Shown here in pieces: positions 1 through 47,453 of a stretch of DNA of 64,000 bases. Where the stretch lies: positions 372,001-436,000 of the forward strand of contig JALMLS010000507.1 in assembly GCA_038496445.1 (NCBI GenBank), written 5' to 3'. Below the pieces are notes generated by a model. It made no database searches, had not been told where the DNA came from, and was given only the letters and a program-made list of their open reading frames with translations. Made by a program: the position numbers and the translations under genes. Position 1 is the first letter of the stretch, and each line of letters opens with the position of its first letter. This DNA comes from Trichosphaerium sp. ATCC 40318 (Eukaryota; Protista; Tubulinea).

Positions 1-379
1 CGAAGATTAAATAAAATCACGTTTCTCTAACCGGCATCGAGCGTCCACTCAGCGTTATTACTTTGTCAAAGTAAAAGCAGTTGATTTCGCCATTTTGAGG
101 TCTTTACACGTTCAGTTCCGCGAAGATACTTCAAGACAACGCAATATGAAGTTTTCATGACACTTTCTTTCTTTCTTGGTTTTGAAGACCGTATATGGGT
201 ACTAAATAAACGCTGTAACTACTCTCAACTCCAATACGCCCAGAGATGATGTTTATGTGGTGTTTACACAAATTCGCTGACAAAAAGTCGTTGACTTTCG
301 TACGCTCGGCAGGAACTCCACTCTACACATTAGTTCATTCGGAAAAAGGATCATCGAGCCAGTTCCTTGCTTTTGAAGC

Positions 380-17579: not shown

Positions 17580-20500
17580 ATGGCGGCTTTAGCCAGTTCA
17601 AAAATGGTAAAGGGCTGCTTCTTATCTATCTTTTTTGTTGGAGCAGGACAAACTTTGCTCTTTTTTTTAAAGTCGTTATTTGTGTTCAAACGTTTTTTGC
17701 TCGAAGCAACCAACCAAAAATACACGAAACAAAAAACCGTCTCCAGTTGCTAATATTGCTTGTTTAGACTCTATTGTTTATCGCTACTACTATGATTTTG
17801 GCTAGCGTATACTGCGCTTCCCACGGAAGAGTTGGTATTTGTGATGCCAACTACCCTACCTGGGGATGCAGACCAGAAGACGTATGTTAACTCTAGAACC
17901 TTTTTAACTTTCGCTCCTTTTTTCCGCTAGTTTGGACAAAACAGTTTTTTTTTTCTCGCATCACGTGACGTGACTTTTTTCAACACGTGATAATACACCC
18001 GATTTTACTGAGTAATGATGTGACCTGACCCGGAAAATTAAAAAAACCGAGATCAACTTACATATTCACAAACAAAAAACCGTTTATCGATCCCATACTC
18101 ACTTACGTTTCTTTGTAGTGGCCTATTGTCGATGGTTCAGTAAACCGAAAAGGATGTACCGATCCAGATGCTGTTATGTCTTGGGCTAGCAGAACTGTTC
18201 GCACTGATGGTATTATACTGTTTGTTGGTGACGAATCATCTCCAGATGATTCATACCAACCAGGAAAAATCACGGACATAACCGTCAAAGTTGTTGACTA
18301 CAGATTGAAGGCAAGTCGTTTTTTCTTTCTCTACGCACAAATTCAAACTTAGTTTTTTCGCACTTTTTTTCCTAACGTTTTTGTGTAGTACCGTGGTCTT
18401 TTACTTTACGCAGAAGATGAAGATGGTAACCGCGTCGGTCGCTTCGCCATTTTACCTGAAAATCCTCGTAAGTAACTTCCCACTTCGAAGTTTTTCTTTC
18501 TAGTTTGGCTTTTCCTTTTGGTTTCAACTTCTTACTTTTTTCTAGAAATCTACCACGTCCCTTTCGGTTTTGGTGATCACCCTTGCGCACACGTTGTTAC
18601 TCACTTCAGCGCTGACCTCAAGCCTTTGGTTTCGACATTCAAGTTTGTCGCTCCTTTAGAAGGAACCGGAAAGATTACAATCCGTTGCCTCATCAAGGAA
18701 GGTGATGCCAATGTTGGCGCCTTTTTCTGGCCTAACTTGGGCGGAGATGTTGAACTCGAGGAATCAGATGTTGAGCTTCCAGAAAAGACTGTATACGAAT
18801 CACTTCCTGGACAATCCTGCACAGAGGCTTGCAATGATATCGGTGGAACTTGCAACAACCAACCTTCAACTGCTACCAACAACGATGCAAGAATCGATAC
18901 TCTCGTCGATACAAACAACTTGCTCTGCAACGCTCCTTTCATTGCTGGATGCTCAAACCTTGGATTATACAAGAAGGGAAGTCACTGCCTCTACCGCGAA
19001 GACACATGCAGCCAACAAGTCACTTGTGATACAAGAGAGCAAAACAGAGCTCGTCTTTGCACTTGTACTGGTGTACCAGGTTCAGCAAGCGCTCGCGCAG
19101 CACAAAGTCCAGCTTCTGTCAAATCCACAAGGTATGCACCAACTTCTTTTAGCCACTTGCTTCTTTTTACCTTATCGTATTTGTTGTTTTAACTCTCGAA
19201 ATAGCTTCGGTTTGTTATTCTCTATGCTTGCTATGGCTATGCTCTTTACTGGTAAAAGCAAAGCAACCGGATCAAGCGCTCTTCTTTTGATCACAGTTTT
19301 GTGCTTATCTACATTCTTCACTGGCGCTTTGGGTCACAATTGGTGTAACAGTAATGCTCGTGCTGTTCAAGAAGGAAGTACTATCGGTCCTTGCCCTCCA
19401 AGAACTGAAGATATCGCTCACGTACAAGTCGGTAACGGACAAGAGTTCGAGATTGAGTGGACTACCGGTCACCCTGGTAACATATTCTCTGACCAACGCG
19501 GAGAAACACCACATGCCTACTTCACAATCATCAAAGCTGAAGATGAAAGCAAACTCGGTCAATTGACATCAGAAATCCTCGACCAATACATTGAAAGCGC
19601 TCCTTCCAGCGCTATCATTCCAGGCGTCAAACAATGGCATCGTCAAATCGCTGGCGGTGACGGTATCAACGTAAGACCTGGTGATGATCCAGATGGTGTA
19701 TACACACGTGAGATCTTCGAAACTGATCCAGAGTGGATTCCACGTCCAGCAGAACCTTTCTGGGGAACAAAACGTTACACAATGAGAAACAAGAACAACA
19801 GAATGTTCGAATACAACCCTGATAAGATTGCCTCCACTATTGCCGTATCATACAGCGATCCTTCAATTCCGTTCGTTCTCGCTGTATACCGTTTCAAACT
19901 CGCTCTTGGATTGGGTCGCCCATTCGATGTTGATTTCGCAAACTTTAAGATTCCAGAAGGCAGCCCTGTTGGTCAGTATATTGTACAATATTACTGGAAA
20001 GGATACTGGGATTGCATTGATGTAGTATCTACTACAGCTCATGTAACAAACAAATACGGAACTATCCCAGTTGGACCACCACCAGCACCTACATTCAAGT
20101 ACGCCTTCTTTGACATGTTTTTTCTCGTTTTGTTTTTCTTGGAATGTAGTAGCATTTATTTATTTCTTCGTAGGCGTGTCGATCACTGCTTTACTCCAGA
20201 CTACCAAACCGTACACGGAGACTGCATGCTCGTTACCAACAATAACCCACAACCTTGTCTTGACATTTGCTCCGGTATCGAAAATTGTGACTACGTCGTT
20301 GTTGTTCCAACTAAGCAACCACCAAATTACGTCATCCCTGGTTACTACCCACCAAGCTGTAACGCTTTGCAATCAGCAAATGCTAATGACGACAACGCTC
20401 TATTGTGTTACGCAGTAACAGCCAGAGAACCAACAACAACTCTCCCTAAAGCCCTCACAACAACCGATCCAGATGATCCATATTTCTACTCAACATGTAT

Positions 20501-21210
20501 GATCAGAAAGAGTACTATCCAAACAGAAGTTCCACCTGTTGAAAACAACCCAGTCATTGCCGCTATTTACAGAGATAAATGTATCAGTTGCGACGATAGA
20601 CAAAGATTCACAGATTACTCAAAGGTATGGGCATGGAACACAGTAACACCTTGTCGCGAATGTGGAGTTAATATCTTCGATGGTGGTGATCAACCGGAAA
20701 TCCCAGACTACAGACCTCCACCTCCACCACCTCCACCAACTGTACCAACAACACTTCCACCTACTGCTGCTCCAACAACAGCTGCACCAACTGCTACACC
20801 ACCTCCAGTTGACGGTCAAGCTTGTCCAGTAGCTATGCTTGATGTTGATCGTACACAATGTAAGTTGATTGCACTTTTTTTTTTTTTCAAGCGATTGTTG
20901 AGTCAATATCCACTTACACTTTTAATTAGACATTGGAGAAGGTTTCAGTTATGAATTCATGAACACTTTCTTCGTCGCCAGATTCCCTACTGGTACTGGT
21001 AGAGTAGACTTTACTGCTACAGTTACTACTGCTAAAGGTCTGACTCCACAATACTGCTTCGCAGGTGGACCAGCCTCCGGCTCTGGCAATGTATTCCAAG
21101 TCACCCTATACCCTGGTAGCCGTCTTGTAGATGTACTCGGATGTGGATGGCAGGCTGTTGATCGCGATGTCACTGTTGTATTGACTGACTGCGTATACAG
21201 TGTATATTAG
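17580..21210 (+). CDS. Secreted/membrane polyprotein: signal peptide - Reeler-like domain - Cys-rich module - TM - internal signal peptide - His1 LPMO-like domain - Cys-rich module - Pro/Thr linker - C-terminal beta domain
   Basis: Exons join in one frame through introns at 17607-17767, ~17882-18118, 18311 (GC donor), ~18468-18545, 19132-19204, ~20099-20173 and ~20860-20929. Reeler-like YQPG...YRGLLLYAEDEDGNRVGRF...C..VVTH...FVAP..GTGKITIRC; ALG|HNW at 19335; EWTTGHPG; GQYIVQYYWKGYWDCIDV. C-ending codon bias resembles actin. Confidence 0.8.
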
Positions 21211-21599
21211 ATGAAAACTTTTTCGTTATTGAGAAATTCAAACGCCCACGGTTTTTATAATGTTTAACAAATAAACACCTTCATTCACTCAAAGCCTCAC
21301 ATTAAATGAATGCACTGTTATCCCTTTTCCTTAAAGAATTTATGGTCTAGTTACACCTACCGATTTCGCACAAAAGCTCTAGAATGCATCAGTGTCAAAC
21401 TTACCCACTTTGCGTTGTTTTTTGACAGCAAATGACATCGACTTTAAAAAATACAATTAATTGATGTCGGTTCATTTCTTTCTAAGTTGTGGTTACCATG
21501 TTAAAATTTTTGTAGCGGGCTGATCCGGGACCGGACCACCTAAAAGTTGTAGTGTCAAGGTAAAGGTCCGAACAGTTTTATTTATGTACAAATATTATC

Positions 21600-24500
21600 T
21601 TAATAGTTCTTGTTAAATGGACAATTTGATGCCCAGTGACCGCGCTTATTACAATAGAAACATTTTGTCTTAGGACATTTGCTAGTCTCATGACCAGTTT
21701 GATTACAATTTTTACATGAAAACCTAGACTTCTTTGATGGAGAACCAGTAAAGGATAAAAACATTGGTTTTCTTTTGTACAATGGGTTCTCAGGAAAATG
21801 ATCTTGATGCCACCTCCAAACCTTCTCATGTACAGTCATCTTACTATAGCTCATTAATAAGATTGGTCATGTGTTAATGATACGTTTTATGCGTACCTTC
21901 TTCTAAATCCCTTGAGGTACATGCCTTCTAAGTTCCTTGCTCTGCTCAGTGCAACATATGCTTGACCATCAGCAAAAGTACGTTCCAAGTCTATTTCGAC
22001 TCTGTCTAATGACATCCCTTGACATTTATGTATTGTAATAGCCCATGCTAATTTTAATGGTAGTTGTATCCTATAACATGTACCAACTTGCGGTATTCTA
22101 CTGCTCATAACGACTAACAAAGTGTTAGCATTTTTCTTAACAAAGAAAAAAATAAGAAAACTGTTTTGCAACTCTTACGAACTTTAGGTGTTACAGATAC
22201 TACAAAAAGATATTGTATGTAGTAATGTGATTATTTTAAACCTTATATATACTACGGGTGTACATAAAAAAGTTGTTGTGTACCTGGAATAATCGTTTTT
22301 TTGAAAGGATGATTTTCGTTTGCAAATTTTATAACAGGCAAAGGGTACTTCTTCTCTTTAAACAATAACAACCCTTTCATTTGCATTATAGTTATTTTAA
22401 TAAGTGTCCTTATCATGCTTGATCTATGTTTTGAACTAGTACCACCAACCTCAGTATTTTCTATTTCTTTGAGCTTTTCTCTAATTGATTCTGTTGGCTT
22501 TCCACTTCTCATCAGATGAGCCATTTGTGCCCTCAACTCATCGTATTTTTTCTTCAGTGATGGCATAACCTAACGCTCTCATCACGTGAGTGAAGAGTAG
22601 ATAAACTTTTGTTTAAAAAAAATCGTCAAAAGAATGTTGCGTACCAGTTTTTTTCTTAGATCAACAAATGCTCCATTGAGTCTGTCCTTGTGCTTATCAT
22701 AGTCTGTGTCCCAATCTACGATTACACCACGAGAACCGTTAACAAGTGTGCTAGTTATATTCTTTGTGAGCATAACCTGAGCACCTTTTTTAAGTTTTAT
22801 CTCTTGTTTCGCCAAGCACCTACATAAGAGATTATAACTCGTGACTGTTTGTAGAAAAAAAAAAAGAGGTAGAAAAAGAATTTAAATTAAGTGCTCTGTT
22901 GAGAGATACACGCATATAAACGAGGGTATTTAAACGTGTTATATGTGGGAGCAATATACACAAATATAATAGTCGTAGACAAGGCGAGAGATTGATGAAA
23001 TGAGAGGTGGGATAACGTACTGATTAAAAAATTTGTCGTGCAATAGGAACTTTCTTGCTTTCGCATCGAAATTCCTTTCTTTTATACTTGTAAATAAGGG
23101 CTTCACCTCGTCTTCAAGGTCTTCTGATTTATGAAACCATATGGCATATTTTTCTCTACAAACTTCAACGAAGTCCTCACTTGTAATAACTTTCTTCAGA
23201 AGAAAAAAAGTTAGTTGTATTTCAAGAACTAAAAAACCTTTAACAAGGACTTTCTCTTACCACCGGACTTGGCAACATATCTAACTCCTTCTTATTGAAA
23301 TCATCAACCACTCTATTCGTAGTGTAGAGACGTGTTGGCTTAATACCATCACCATCTCCGAGAGGTCTATTACAACGCAACAACATTTGTTCTGTTTGTT
23401 TTCTTATTGTTCCAACACGTAACTCATTAAGGCATCTCACAAATACCTCATCCTTCTGTCTGAACGCCTATGTAATATTCTTTAATACATTCATTAATTT
23501 GACTCTCGACATACTTTGGTAAGTTCAAAGTGATTGTTTCCAAACAATCTACGCCATGCGCTTGCCTATTTCAAAACGCTTAACCACGTGCTTGTTTTCT
23601 GTTATTCTTACTTCAAAGCAGTATTTATGTGTTTGCCAACCTGGTTCAGCTTCTAGTTGCTTCAATTGTACTCTATCCGCAACTGTGAACTTACTGAAAA
23701 CCGGAGGAAGTTGAAAGAAATCCTTCAAAATAATTAGCAGATCAATTGAAAAAACCCAGAAAGAGATCGTACCCCTGTTACAATTACTTGAAATGCATAC
23801 TTAGAATACGGTATGTGAATGTCCCCATTATTACCACGTAATTCCCAGGCTTTGTTTATAATGCCATCAAACCTGTAATGATATCATTAACAAACAACCG
23901 AAGAAACATTGGTGTACTTACAACTCACCAGAAATCATAGATATTTCGTCTATAATCAATACCCTCAACTCAAGCCATCTTTATAATGTGTTAGTATCAT
24001 GTATGTGTTGATAGTATGGTGGGTGAGAGTTACATACGTTTTATATTTACCATGCATTTTGTTTAAATCTAAAACAAATATCAAAACAAAGAAAAGTCTA
24101 CTGAAGCGACAGGCTACACTATTGTTGTATGACCTGATACGGAAAACAACACTTTCTAGAGCGCACAAGATATAATGGGATGTTTACCTTCGTCTAGTTT
24201 AACAACACCACATCCTGCAAATGAATGTAACGAAGTACCTTCCAAAGGAACGGAAGCAATGCCTTAGTAAGATGTTTAGTACTACATAAAAAGTTGATAA
24301 AAGTACCTGTAGACGCAGTCACTGCTACTTTGGTGTTAAAGTCTTCTTGACCATATTTAAGCTTTAACCCTTTAATAATCCTCCTAAGAAGAAACGACTT
24401 GCCAGTACCAGCACTACCCGTTATAAACGCAGACTGTTCTTTGTTTATGACGGCGTCATATATTTGTTGTTGTTCTTCACTTAGTGGCAGTTCTTTGATT

Positions 24501-44900: not shown

Positions 44901-47453
44901 AGCCCTAGCTGCCGTTTTTAGTGCAACAATGGATCAGAGCATTCAGGAGAATGTCATGTCTACTGTGTACACAACTGCATTCGTCTCTTCGCACTTCCAC
45001 TACACAGAAGCATTTGATAACCTTGTGTCGAATATATGTGACCTTTCAGAGATATTAACTACAAGCCCAGACAACTTTATCTTCAGCTTTGCGCAGAACA
45101 GAAAAGCACAGCTTGCAGCTATTTCTTTATTTACACTTGCTCGCCAATACGGACAATGTATGAGTACAGGATGGGAGAGCATTGTCAAATGTATTGTTAT
45201 GCTACATGACGCTCAATTACTCCCTAAAGGCGTGTTCCAATACAAAGTCCTACTCAATGAAAGAACCTACCAAGGACAAGAAGGAGGTACGTGTCAAATT
45301 TCTTGTGTTGGTTGCAATCACTAAGTTGTTTTAAAAAGGTGGTTGGTTTGGTAGCATCTTTGGAATGTTTGAGGATAAGACTATGCTAGAAAAGACTCAA
45401 AAGACAATAGAGGAGTGCAATATACCTGCATTGATAAAGTCGACAGCTTCTGTTCCTGTCGCAGCGCTGAATACTTTACTGGGTTACCTAATCAATTTGT
45501 CTTCACTTACTAAAAAGTACGTACAAGTTTCACTCTATTGCTTCTTTGTTGTTTATTGTTTTAATAGTAGAGTTACACAACACGCAATATCCAGAGCATT
45601 GTTAGCACTTAACTTGATAACACAGATTGCGTTACACAATGAACGTCGTGCATCTATTGTTTGGAGTAAGATTGGAAACCACCTTGTTAACATAGCCCTA
45701 GACAACACTTCTAAAGGTATCATTGCTTTTTAAATTGATTACCTGTGTTCTAATAGTTATCAGATTTGTCAATGGCAGCTCTAGGAGATCTAATGGTGCT
45801 CATGGGCAGGCTAAAGGTATTAAAGCTCGAACGAAACGCAACTGCTTCTACGTTTTGTACTCATTCAGTCTCGTTAGGGATCTGGCCTAGCTGGTGAGAT
45901 GATGACATCATTTAAACGTCTTCTCGAAAAAGCTGTTCGTCAACGTCTTGCTAAGTGTAGAACTGAAATCATATCTACCATCACAAAGTTTGTTGAGAAC
46001 AATGCAGTTTACATTGAGTACGTCTTTGCTGACTTTTAAGTTCATTAATTTCTCTTCGATTTTCTTTTATTTAATCAGTTTACTGATTACCTATAGCGTT
46101 CCAGAACACTGGCAGCGTCTTGCTGATATAATTGCTATTATGCTTCAAATCAAAGGTGTTCTTCCTCTTGCTCTAAAAGCAATAAGTTTTATTGTCTGTC
46201 CTGAAGATCGTGCTGAGAAAGAATCAGAAGAACCTACAGAAAAAAGCTCTACTTCTAATACTACGACTTATCTTTCAAGAAATAATTTCAATGTTATGTT
46301 AGCGCTACTTCTTGCGTTTGCTAAACATGAACATTGTACAGCAGAAGTCACAGAAGAAGTCATAAAATTAATAACACAGTTGGCAGTATGTGTTCCTGTA
46401 TTCGTTCAAAAACAAAACGCTGATACGCCTGACTCAGCAGGAGCTAATAAGGGTATACCTAAACAAACCAAGTCCAACTGAGAACTAATTTTTTCTTCAG
46501 AAATCACACAATATTGGCTCAAGATATTTGTTGCTATTTCGAAGCTTGCACAAGGATCTCAAGGATTTACAAGATCCCTTTCAATTAGTGCCCTAGAGAA
46601 GAATATTCTAGCAAGTGATTTGAAGATACTTACGTCAAGCGACTGGGCTTACTTAATTGAGAATGTACGAGACAAATGTTCCCGAATTACATTGACTTTA
46701 TTGACACTGTTTTAGGTGTATTTGCCTTTCTCTGAGAAATTCATGGAAGCAAATACTACAAAGTCATCTGCGGAGGCAGTGGATGAAACTAGATTACGCG
46801 CTATACGTTTAGTCACAAAGACATTTTTGCAGTACGTGAAAACCAAGTAGTTTTCTGGTTTCCTATTTTCAGTGAAAATCCGCTCTCAATGAGTCTACTT
46901 TATGCTCTTGTTCTCAAAATACTGTCTTTTTGGCCCGGAGAACGCTGGTTGTTGTACAAATTAAACACAAGGGTCTGTGGCTTAATGGTATGGCAATTGG
47001 TCGCAATCCAATCGGTTGCTGGTTCGAATCCAGTCAGGCCCTTTCATTTTTCTTGAGCTGATTTTTGCATGAAACCCTTTGCTCTTTGTTTATCCGCTTT
47101 TAGATACATGTCTGTTATCGTTGCGTACGATAATTTTAACGAACTTTGGCTCAAGATTTTGACATTCTTGGAGACTTTTCACAAGGCAGCAAGTTTGGTA
47201 TGTTGAAATTACGATGAAAGCTTTCATTTTGTTACTCATGTATTCATTGTTTCTAATTGGTTGTATTTTTTAGGCCGAAGCTATTACAGAGTTACTAAAG
47301 AATGTATTATTTGTTATGCAATCAGAAGGCGTATTAAAAGACCCAACAAAGGCTTCTCTTAATCCAAGAGAGACTGCTCTATGGAAAATTACTTGGGAAA
47401 AGTTGGATACTTTTTGTCCTACACTTAAAAAGCAAGTTGAAGCACTAGTGTGA
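41971..47453 (+). CDS. GBF1: Large ARF guanine-nucleotide exchange factor, GBF1/GNOM class (DCB-HUS-Sec7-HDS)
   Basis: GEIQNVLSAMRLNYRW, PFLEIIKSGNTSGPITGVAL, HUS box YINYDCD, Sec7 Glu finger FRVPGEAQVMERIM, EAITELLKNVLFVM; stop TGA 47453. Confidence 0.9.
46971..47042 (+). tRNA. trnC-GCA: tRNA-Cys(GCA) inside a GBF1 intron (46832-47103), with atypical C33
   Basis: Acceptor stem GGGTCTG/CAGGCCC with U73 discriminator; A-box TGGCTTAATGG; anticodon stem ATTGG/CCAAT around loop TC-GCA-AT; T-arm GCTGG-TTCGAAT-CCAGT; followed by a T-run terminator. Confidence 0.88.

Follow-up and report, generated by a model that had tools for sequence, protein, structure and literature searches.

A candidate copper His-brace domain of the LPMO type behind a predicted internal signal peptide in a precursor from Trichosphaerium sp. 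ATCC 40318

Introduction

Lytic polysaccharide monooxygenases (LPMOs) have reshaped our understanding of how cellulose and chitin are broken down, and each new family, from AA9 to AA18, has widened the range of their substrates and roles; AA18 is recorded as an LPMO family (PMC13431639). Two groups of described proteins are of particular relevance here. The AA15 family is exemplified by TdAA15A of Thermobia domestica (5msz), which has His1, His91 and Tyr184 in a 195-residue chain, and it has also been reported from algae, oomycetes and Ichthyosporea (PMC5823890). X325, Bim1 and CopC are copper proteins, of which X325 is anchored at the cell surface (PMC7924993). In this study we describe a gene encoding a domain that begins with the motif HNW. 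It lies in a 64,000-nucleotide (nt) stretch of Trichosphaerium sp. ATCC 40318 (assembly GCA_038496445.1, contig JALMLS010000507.1, positions 372,001 to 436,000 of the forward strand), hereafter the window, from a eukaryotic genome of ~38% GC with short introns. We propose that the HNW domain is probably a secreted copper His-brace domain of the LPMO type, belonging to an uncatalogued protist family and released from its precursor by signal peptidase.

Similar to AA15, the HNW family is eukaryotic and predicted to be secreted, with a histidine placed to become residue 1 after a signal peptide and with a second histidine. In both, 11 residues separate the (candidate) axial tyrosine from the point where the core ends, and extra C-terminal modules are common. 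In contrast, AA15 proteins start with HG rather than HNW and lack the extra conserved subdomain of helices and loops, ~130 residues long, that follows the second histidine in the HNW family; also unlike AA15, the HNW domain is mostly internal to a precursor. With AA9, AA10, AA11, AA13 and AA16 the HNW domain shares a modelled beta-sandwich, aligned with these enzymes from their His1 onwards (structural Z 5.2-6.2), the Tyr/Phe-x-x-Cys motif and a predicted disulfide leading back to the N-terminal part, but it lacks the long L2-type region by which their second histidine is separated from His1.

Results

The HNW family and its conserved residues

An exhaustive HMMER profile search was run on 1.84 billion protein cluster representatives (clusters at 50% identity), using a two-sequence profile made from the window domain and protein P0001. 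It returned 533 representatives with E ≤ 1e-3, of which 320 reach E ≤ 1e-10 and 60 reach E ≤ 1e-30. Word-indexed homologue searches gave just 1, 0 and 10 matches, all unnamed. P0001 is a 450-amino-acid (aa) transcriptome protein with 30% identity to the window domain; it is a stand-alone form, with upstream stop codons and a 13-residue signal peptide that ends directly before HNW. The members that carry an organism name belong to the radiolarian Phyllostaurus siculus and the ciliate Euplotes focardii (MMETSP), and the others are unnamed or labelled 'hypothetical protein', on contigs of metatranscriptome length. The HNW family is large and has no Pfam model. A six-frame hidden Markov model scan found a single HNW domain in the window and no second copy.

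Conservation was counted in an alignment of 108 sequences (A2), with residues numbered from the HNW histidine. Arg9, His46 and Gly213 are invariant (108/108), and the N-terminus is nearly so (His1 and Asn2 each 107/108, Trp3 103/108). Pro19, Tyr85, Asp168, Tyr173, Pro179, Trp221, Gly223, Asp226 and Asp229 are each conserved in at least 90%. Position 224 holds Tyr in 103 sequences and Phe in 5, an alternation that LPMOs also show at their axial position, and position 218 is His or Gln in 81 of the 108. Of the 108 sequences, 86 have Cys at positions 20 and 227 and 22 have it at neither; no sequence has just one of the two, although kinship among the sequences inflates this statistic. Such an all-or-none pattern is what a disulfide gives, and we predict that the two are bonded. 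Their co-variation is independent sequence evidence that the segment after His1 would lie near the strand carrying Tyr224.

The motifs on which an earlier note on this DNA had based its proposal of a divergent His-brace domain are all in frame on the + strand where it had read them: HNW at 19335-19343, GQEFEIEW-TTGHPG with His46, AYFTII, and the C-terminal motif GQYIVQYYWKGYWDCIDV with Tyr224 and Cys227. These motifs go well beyond what chance would give. Its remarks on an unusually short His1-His2 spacing (45 residues vs 90 in TdAA15A) and a very short loop before the axial tyrosine (a two-residue W-x-G-Y turn) also hold, and both features are common to the whole family. Other points needed correction. 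The domain does begin at 19335, but it reaches ~20054 rather than 20030. The 'early Cys pair' (C..GPCP) is not a pair, as Cys4 occurs in this copy only (1/108) and Cys20 co-occurs with Cys227. Likewise, the supposed long insertion is not specific to this copy; residues ~68-200 are conserved across the family (Tyr85, Ala89-Pro90, Asp168, Tyr173). The window copy does depart from the family at Cys4 (otherwise aliphatic), at Asn7-Ala8 (usually Pro-Ser) and at Thr168 (Asp in 101/108).

A predicted internal signal peptide ahead of His1

Among 132 relatives with matches starting at profile position 1, 130 have HNW (replaced in a few by HNY, HNF or HQW) directly behind a hydrophobic stretch and an A-x-A-type site. 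This arrangement is N-terminal in 37 relatives and internal in 93 (~70%), where the histidine stands anywhere from residue 49 to residue 921. Sites were judged on three points: whether the residue at -1 is small, whether the one at -3 is small or aliphatic, and whether there is a hydrophobic core of 8 residues. All three criteria were passed by 33 of the 37 N-terminal and 86 of the 93 internal cases, compared with 10 of 2408 control histidines in the same proteins. The -1/-3 rule by itself was passed by 93/93 internal and 36-37/37 N-terminal relatives, and an h-region is present in 120/130. In the window gene, the residues before the histidine are GALG, with small residues at -1 and -3 and a strongly hydrophobic h-region.

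Lys or Arg occurs within the 20 residues before the h-region in 89 of the 93 internal relatives (mean 1.8 K/R vs 0.2 D/E), and 77 of the 93 have a further hydrophobic stretch at -60 to -21. This suggests a hairpin whose short basic loop would face the cytosol by the positive-inside rule. Judged by sequence, the HNW histidine would become residue 1 upon removal of the signal peptide, and in the window gene it would exist as an N-terminus only after internal cleavage. Since His1 lies in the middle of the protein behind this internal signal, the chain would have to be cut in order to work.

Predicted fold and structural matches

An AlphaFold2 model made from A2 (pLDDT 87.5, pTM 0.89) is mostly beta, with two helices after the strand at residues 60-67. 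In an exhaustive VIA-align structural search of 48,161 chains, LaX325 (6ibh) ranked first (Z 7.2, root-mean-square deviation (rmsd) 3.2, 126 residues) and TdAA15A second (Z 7.2, rmsd 2.6, 116 residues, 16% identity). They were followed by AA13 (Z 6.2), AA9 (5.8), AA11 (5.8 and 5.7), AA10 (5.7 and 5.2) and AA16 (5.3), and every one of these His-brace matches aligns from its own His1. His-brace proteins made up 18 of the 50 matches listed, namely 17 LPMO entries and LaX325; AA14 and AA17 were not found among these 50. Structure-based identity was 11-22% for the LPMO rows vs 4-13% for the other rows, with most pilin and adhesin rows at 4-10%. The structural alignment ends at residue 235 of the model and residue 195 of TdAA15A, with Tyr224 and Tyr184 each 11 residues from that end; these alignment ranges, as opposed to a residue alignment, are consistent with the two tyrosines lying opposite each other.

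A shape search of the ESM Atlas placed two LPMO-labelled clusters on top (TM 0.53 and 0.46). By language-model features, the nearest clusters were ones bearing LPMO_10 (0.88-0.89, under the 0.9 line), and a second family member lay closest to a DUF7492 cluster and to one labelled 'LPMO' (0.86). The beta-rich model, with its best Z of 7.2 in the middling range, is what bears on whether an Ig/FnIII-like sandwich brings His1, His46 and Tyr224 together.

Comparison with known LPMO families

The earlier note had found the domain not assignable to a known AA family, and with respect to the Pfam LPMO families this remains so, as none of them claims it. The window HNW domain has no Pfam match at E ≤ 1. 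No Pfam family except AA9 (PF03443) has matches to two or more members. AA9 matches 4 of the 108, with a best E of 0.005; all of these matches fall under the gathering score of 27.8 bits (best 13-20 bits), and the window copy is not among them. In P0053, the AA9 match (13.1 bits, E 0.088) aligns domain residues 9-112 with profile positions 37-121 and thus covers the stretch holding the second histidine. We also considered whether members with Gln222 carry an AA9-like Q-x-Y-x-x-C motif and rejected this idea, as only one of the five has a weak AA9 match, located around the second histidine and away from the C-terminal motif. NCBIfam models gave scattered single chance matches on the 108 members and no LPMO. 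On sequence, then, the HNW domain cannot be placed in AA9, AA10 or AA15. We found no published work on the HNW family or on a layout of Reeler, internal signal and LPMO-like domain; literature searches for LPMO with Reeler, LPMO with internal signal peptide, CYBDOM with LPMO, and DUF7492 returned nothing, and combinations of protist with LPMO returned nothing relevant.

Gene structure and flanking modules

RNA contigs reveal one spliced gene at 17580-21210 (+) that encodes a 952-aa precursor, the spliced translation being open. Seven introns are removed in public RNA contigs, with all seven splice joints visible (17607-17767, 17882-18118, 18311-18388, 18468-18545, 19132-19204, 20099-20173 and 20860-20929). 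A 2894-nt contig from RNA run X13 spans 17804-21248 with all six introns inside it removed, and leaves out only the first exon and the first intron. The joint 19131/19205 preserves the reading frame and is present in runs X2, X4 and X13, which come from three studies; its depth in X2 is 284, vs 420-800 for the adjoining contigs. The contigs differ from the window by 25 synonymous and 11 non-synonymous variants, and the three replacements within the HNW domain all fall in variable loops. Therefore, the gene is expressed and under constraint. Two assumptions about the gene are corrected by this model: the protein does not start at a Met at 19224, as the contigs join upstream exons in frame, and the domain does not stand at the N-terminus of its own gene but occupies residues 377-616 of the precursor. 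Coordinates are collected in Table 1. As a separate observation, intron 18311-18388 has a GC-AG boundary (GCAAGT...TAG), and each of the seven introns has TAG, not CAG, as its acceptor.

The N-terminal part of the precursor, consisting of Reeler-like and Cys-rich modules, has homologues in the N-terminal parts of 89 stored relatives (lowest E 4e-55). Within the homologous region, P0012 (Euplotes), P0016 and P0006 pass the Pfam threshold for Reeler (PF02014), and the spliced N-terminal part matches their Reeler regions at E 1e-26 to 3e-34. The window exons alone have no Pfam match with the Reeler profile, and the module is called Reeler-like by transitivity through these three relatives. P0006 additionally has a weak DOMON match. 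The layout of Reeler, hairpin and HNW domain occurs in dozens of clusters, including one from Euplotes focardii. Behind the HNW domain, the Cys-rich region recurs in 83 stored relatives, and P0016 carries an extracellular mucin-type WxxW module at that side. Pfam searches with the downstream part, the upstream open reading frame (ORF) and single exons found no match. For the C-terminal module of ~110 aa, neither the ~195 stored family proteins nor Pfam or the Atlas offered a relative, and this module may have a binding role specific to the lineage.

Some further features of the N-terminal half deserve mention. Met67 (51/61) and His157 (57/61) are conserved in the Reeler-like part (window 17780-18600), 90 residues apart. 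This spacing presumably resembles that of the Met/His haem ligands in DOMON-type cytochromes, such as the cellobiose dehydrogenase domain that reduces LPMOs, and we regard it as a lead only. In the Cys-rich module (18548-19131, residues 137-332), ten cysteines are each shared by 50 or more of the 61 relatives. In P0010 and P0006 this module weakly matches the last ~85 positions of Glyco_transf_18 (the C-terminal region of GnT-V), at E 4.5e-04 and 3.2e-05, both below threshold.

Table 1. Positions in the window of the precursor gene, its modules and the candidate site residues.
Feature	Position	Strand	Basis
Exons 1-5	17580-17606, 17768-17881, 18119-18310, 18389-18467, 18546-19131	+	RNA splice joints
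N-terminal signal peptide, precursor residues 1-26	in exons 1-5	+	translation
Reeler-like module and Cys-rich module, residues 27-332	within 17580-19131	+	homology to relatives
73-nt GT-AG intron joining the Reeler part in frame to hairpin and HNW domain	19132-19204	+	RNA
Hydrophobic segment FGLLFSMLAMAMLF, residues 334-347, putative stop-transfer or anchor	19206-19247	+	hydropathy
Basic loop TGKSKATGSS, residues 348-357, predicted cytosolic	19248-19277	+	K/R counts in relatives
Internal signal-peptide-like segment ALLLITVLCLSTFFTGALG, residues 358-376, with A-x-G signal-peptidase site at its end	19278-19334	+	
HNW domain, precursor residues 377-616, domain residues 1-240	19335-20054	+	family search, alignment, model, fold searches
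His1 (His377 of precursor), proposed N-terminal copper ligand	19335-19337	+	His in 107/108
Cys20, predicted disulfide partner of Cys227 (20013-20015)	19392-19394	+	co-occurrence
His46, proposed second copper ligand (T-G-H)	19470-19472	+	108/108
Tyr224, proposed axial aromatic (W-x-G-Y-x-D-C-x-D-V)	20004-20006	+	Tyr 103, Phe 5 of 108
75-nt in-frame GT-AG intron	20099-20173	+	joint in RNA runs X1, X2, X13
Cys-rich module(s) behind HNW domain, residues 632-800	20175-20681	+	homologous region in relatives
Pro/Thr-rich linker, residues 805-842	20694-20807	+	translation
C-terminal ~110-aa module, residues 843-952	20808-21210	+	split by 70-nt intron 20860-20929
Stop codon; mRNA contig ends near 21248	21208-21210	+	RNA contigs

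Other features of the window

Directly downstream of the gene, at 21600-22171 (-), ORFs encode a CCHC zinc knuckle (E 6.7e-08) and the C-terminal portion of a PIF1/UvrD-like helicase of superfamily 1 (Herpes_Helicase, E 8.5e-07; UvrD_C_2). Together these may be the remnant of a Helitron-like or other mobile element. The 64-kb window contains 53 copies of the palindrome CACGTG, compared with an expectation of 11.4 (sd 3.5); none of 100 shuffles gave more than 20. Its sites are found in introns, exons and spacers, for example at 17962-17967 and 17984-17989 in intron 17882-18118. A tRNA gene at 46971-47042 (+) is the sole Rfam match in the window (57.6 bits).

Discussion

Based on these observations, we predict that the precursor is processed as follows. 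An N-terminal signal peptide would bring the Reeler-like and Cys-rich part into the lumen of the endoplasmic reticulum, and the hydrophobic segment 334-347 would stop transfer. The short Lys-rich loop would remain cytosolic, while segment 358-376 would enter the membrane again and act as an internal signal peptide, after which signal peptidase would cut behind Gly376. The expected products are a Reeler protein held in the membrane and a freed HNW domain, starting with histidine and followed by its Cys-rich and C-terminal modules. The copper site would then be formed by the amino group and side chain of His1 and the side chain of His46, with Tyr224 beneath the metal and a Cys20-Cys227 disulfide tying the segment after His1 to the Tyr224 strand. 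Copper binding, the geometry of the site, the cleavage and oxidative action on polysaccharides are all things that we infer. Between polysaccharide cleavage and copper handling we prefer the former, given the Tyr/Phe at the putative axial position, the His/Gln at 218 and the extracellular modules predicted behind the domain. What supports the earlier proposal is the set of three conserved candidate residues, the signal-type site and the top ranks of LaX325 and TdAA15A; what does not separate a copper His-brace domain from unrelated beta-sandwiches is the range of Z scores, which both share.

Several results count against this interpretation. No sequence method ties the HNW family to any known LPMO. 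Pfam LPMO_10 (PF03067; AA10/AA15), which does recognize AA15, matches 0 of the 108 members at E ≤ 1, and Pfam searches with N-terminal and C-terminal fragments of the domain at E ≤ 10 found no LPMO family. Sequence searches of the PDB with whole-domain, N-terminal and C-terminal profiles and with one single member found no LPMO; their sole rows were eIF2D at E 1.5, taken as chance. The earlier note had looked to an AlphaFold model followed by Foldseek. The model is a beta-sandwich, as it had anticipated, but Foldseek gave no match at E ≤ 1e-3, either against the PDB, where AA9, AA10 and AA11 were scattered among weak rows, or against viral models. A Z of 7.2 is middling and a typical best score for models that have no clear relative, and pilin, adhesin and Ig-like sandwiches at Z 5-6.5 are interspersed with the LPMO rows. 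The window copy lacks the near-invariant Asp168, having Thr there, and has an odd unpaired Cys4, while the cleavage after Gly376 is deduced from the site in the sequence. Contigs, moreover, cannot show where transcripts start. Taken together, the fold evidence points consistently in one direction, yet it is not conclusive.

The domain could instead be a non-enzymatic His-brace copper protein like X325/Bim1 or CopC, serving copper uptake or homeostasis at the cell surface with no cleavage of polysaccharide. LaX325 ties for the best structural match, with 126 of 150 residues aligned from residue 1; X325/Bim1 proteins share with the HNW domain a (candidate) His-brace, a compact core and association with the cell surface; and to our knowledge X325 has no polysaccharide activity. 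The membrane-held partner of the HNW domain recalls surface-anchored X325 (PMC7924993). A short His1-His2 spacing and the absence of any carbohydrate-binding module recognized by Pfam in the window copy would fit this explanation as well. On the other hand, X325 is fungal and small (~150 aa), whereas the HNW family is found in protists and is likened to X325 by structure. X325 proteins carry their own GPI (glycosylphosphatidylinositol) signal. At the position where the HNW family has Tyr or Phe, as in catalytic LPMOs, X325 has what we take to be an Asp serving as an extra ligand. The His/Gln at 218 in 81/108 also resembles second-sphere residues of LPMOs, and the large Cys-rich and mucin-type modules behind the domain are reminiscent of the substrate-binding modules of AA15. 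We therefore regard a purely copper-handling role as rather unlikely, though it deserves to be taken seriously.

Much less probable, in our opinion, is an extracellular Ig-like or FnIII-like sandwich that has no copper site and shares only its fold with LPMOs, the conserved His and Tyr serving folding, another metal or a ligand. The pilins, adhesins and other sandwiches that score close to the LPMO rows would be expected in that case, as would the outcome of the Foldseek search and the missing link to LPMOs at the sequence level. However, both of the best matches among the 48,161 chains are His-brace proteins, and the combination of His1, an invariant second His and Tyr/Phe-x-x-Cys is an LPMO signature. 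Nothing else explains why 130 of 132 relatives should keep a histidine exactly where a signal-peptidase cut would make it the N-terminus, when 93 of them need an internal signal for this.

We considered also that the domain might be made from its own shorter mRNA, starting at Met339 (19221), Met342 (19230) or Met344 (19236) and carrying an ordinary signal peptide, with the joined transcript being read-through or a minor form. These methionines do precede the signal-type segment, two runs (X1 and X2) have contigs that start at 19231, no contig of X1 crosses 19039-19230, and stand-alone forms occur in other species. Nevertheless, we hold this to be very unlikely. The contig breaks fall at variant sites; the 19131/19205 joint recurs in frame across runs and studies, and one contig holds both halves fully spliced. 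The same in-frame fusion is present in 93 relatives, mostly on contigs of mRNA length. A separate short transcript, if possible, would leave the identity of the domain unchanged. A separate upstream gene with a GPI-type tail, ending at a stop at 19190-19192, is ruled out because that stop lies inside the 73-nt intron spliced in three runs.

If a secreted His-brace domain is indeed cut from the precursor as we propose, the closest parallel for its biogenesis is viral. In the flavivirus prM-E-NS1 region, host signal peptidase cuts envelope polyproteins at internal signal sequences. The HNW precursor resembles such polyproteins in its predicted stop-transfer segment, basic cytosolic loop, re-inserting signal and luminal site, and in the two products expected per chain. 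It differs in that it is encoded by a cellular gene and in that cleavage would at the same time supply a catalytic ligand, namely the amino group of His1. We found no published case of internal-signal polyprotein cutting for any LPMO-like protein.

A further, more speculative possibility is that one chain supplies a two-part extracellular redox device. A Reeler/DOMON-like module held in the membrane and an LPMO of a new family would be delivered 1:1 to the same spot, the cut would create the copper ligand, and the Reeler part would bind a b-type haem through Met67/His157 and feed electrons, across the membrane or along it, to the LPMO. FRRS1/SDR2 proteins combine Reeler, DOMON and cytochrome b561, and the cytochrome domain of cellobiose dehydrogenase is an LPMO reductant. 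The HNW precursor shares a Reeler-like upstream half with such proteins, and one relative has the weak DOMON match; unlike them, however, the window copy reaches no Pfam threshold, and we know of no haem binding by Reeler domains. We consider this device unlikely.

Conclusions

If copper is bound, the HNW family would be a protist branch of the His-brace proteins in which His1 and His46 are arranged unusually compactly. If the proposed processing is true as well, a single cut by a housekeeping protease would divide a cellular polyprotein and yield a metal ligand. This biogenesis is the more surprising part, and it is relevant to the way in which LPMOs and their partners come together at the cell surface. 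Should the redox-device reading prove true, the domain would represent a new LPMO family, its activation would follow a route new for LPMOs, and a Reeler domain would have its first redox role, in a layout that would be conserved across protist groups including a ciliate and a radiolarian.

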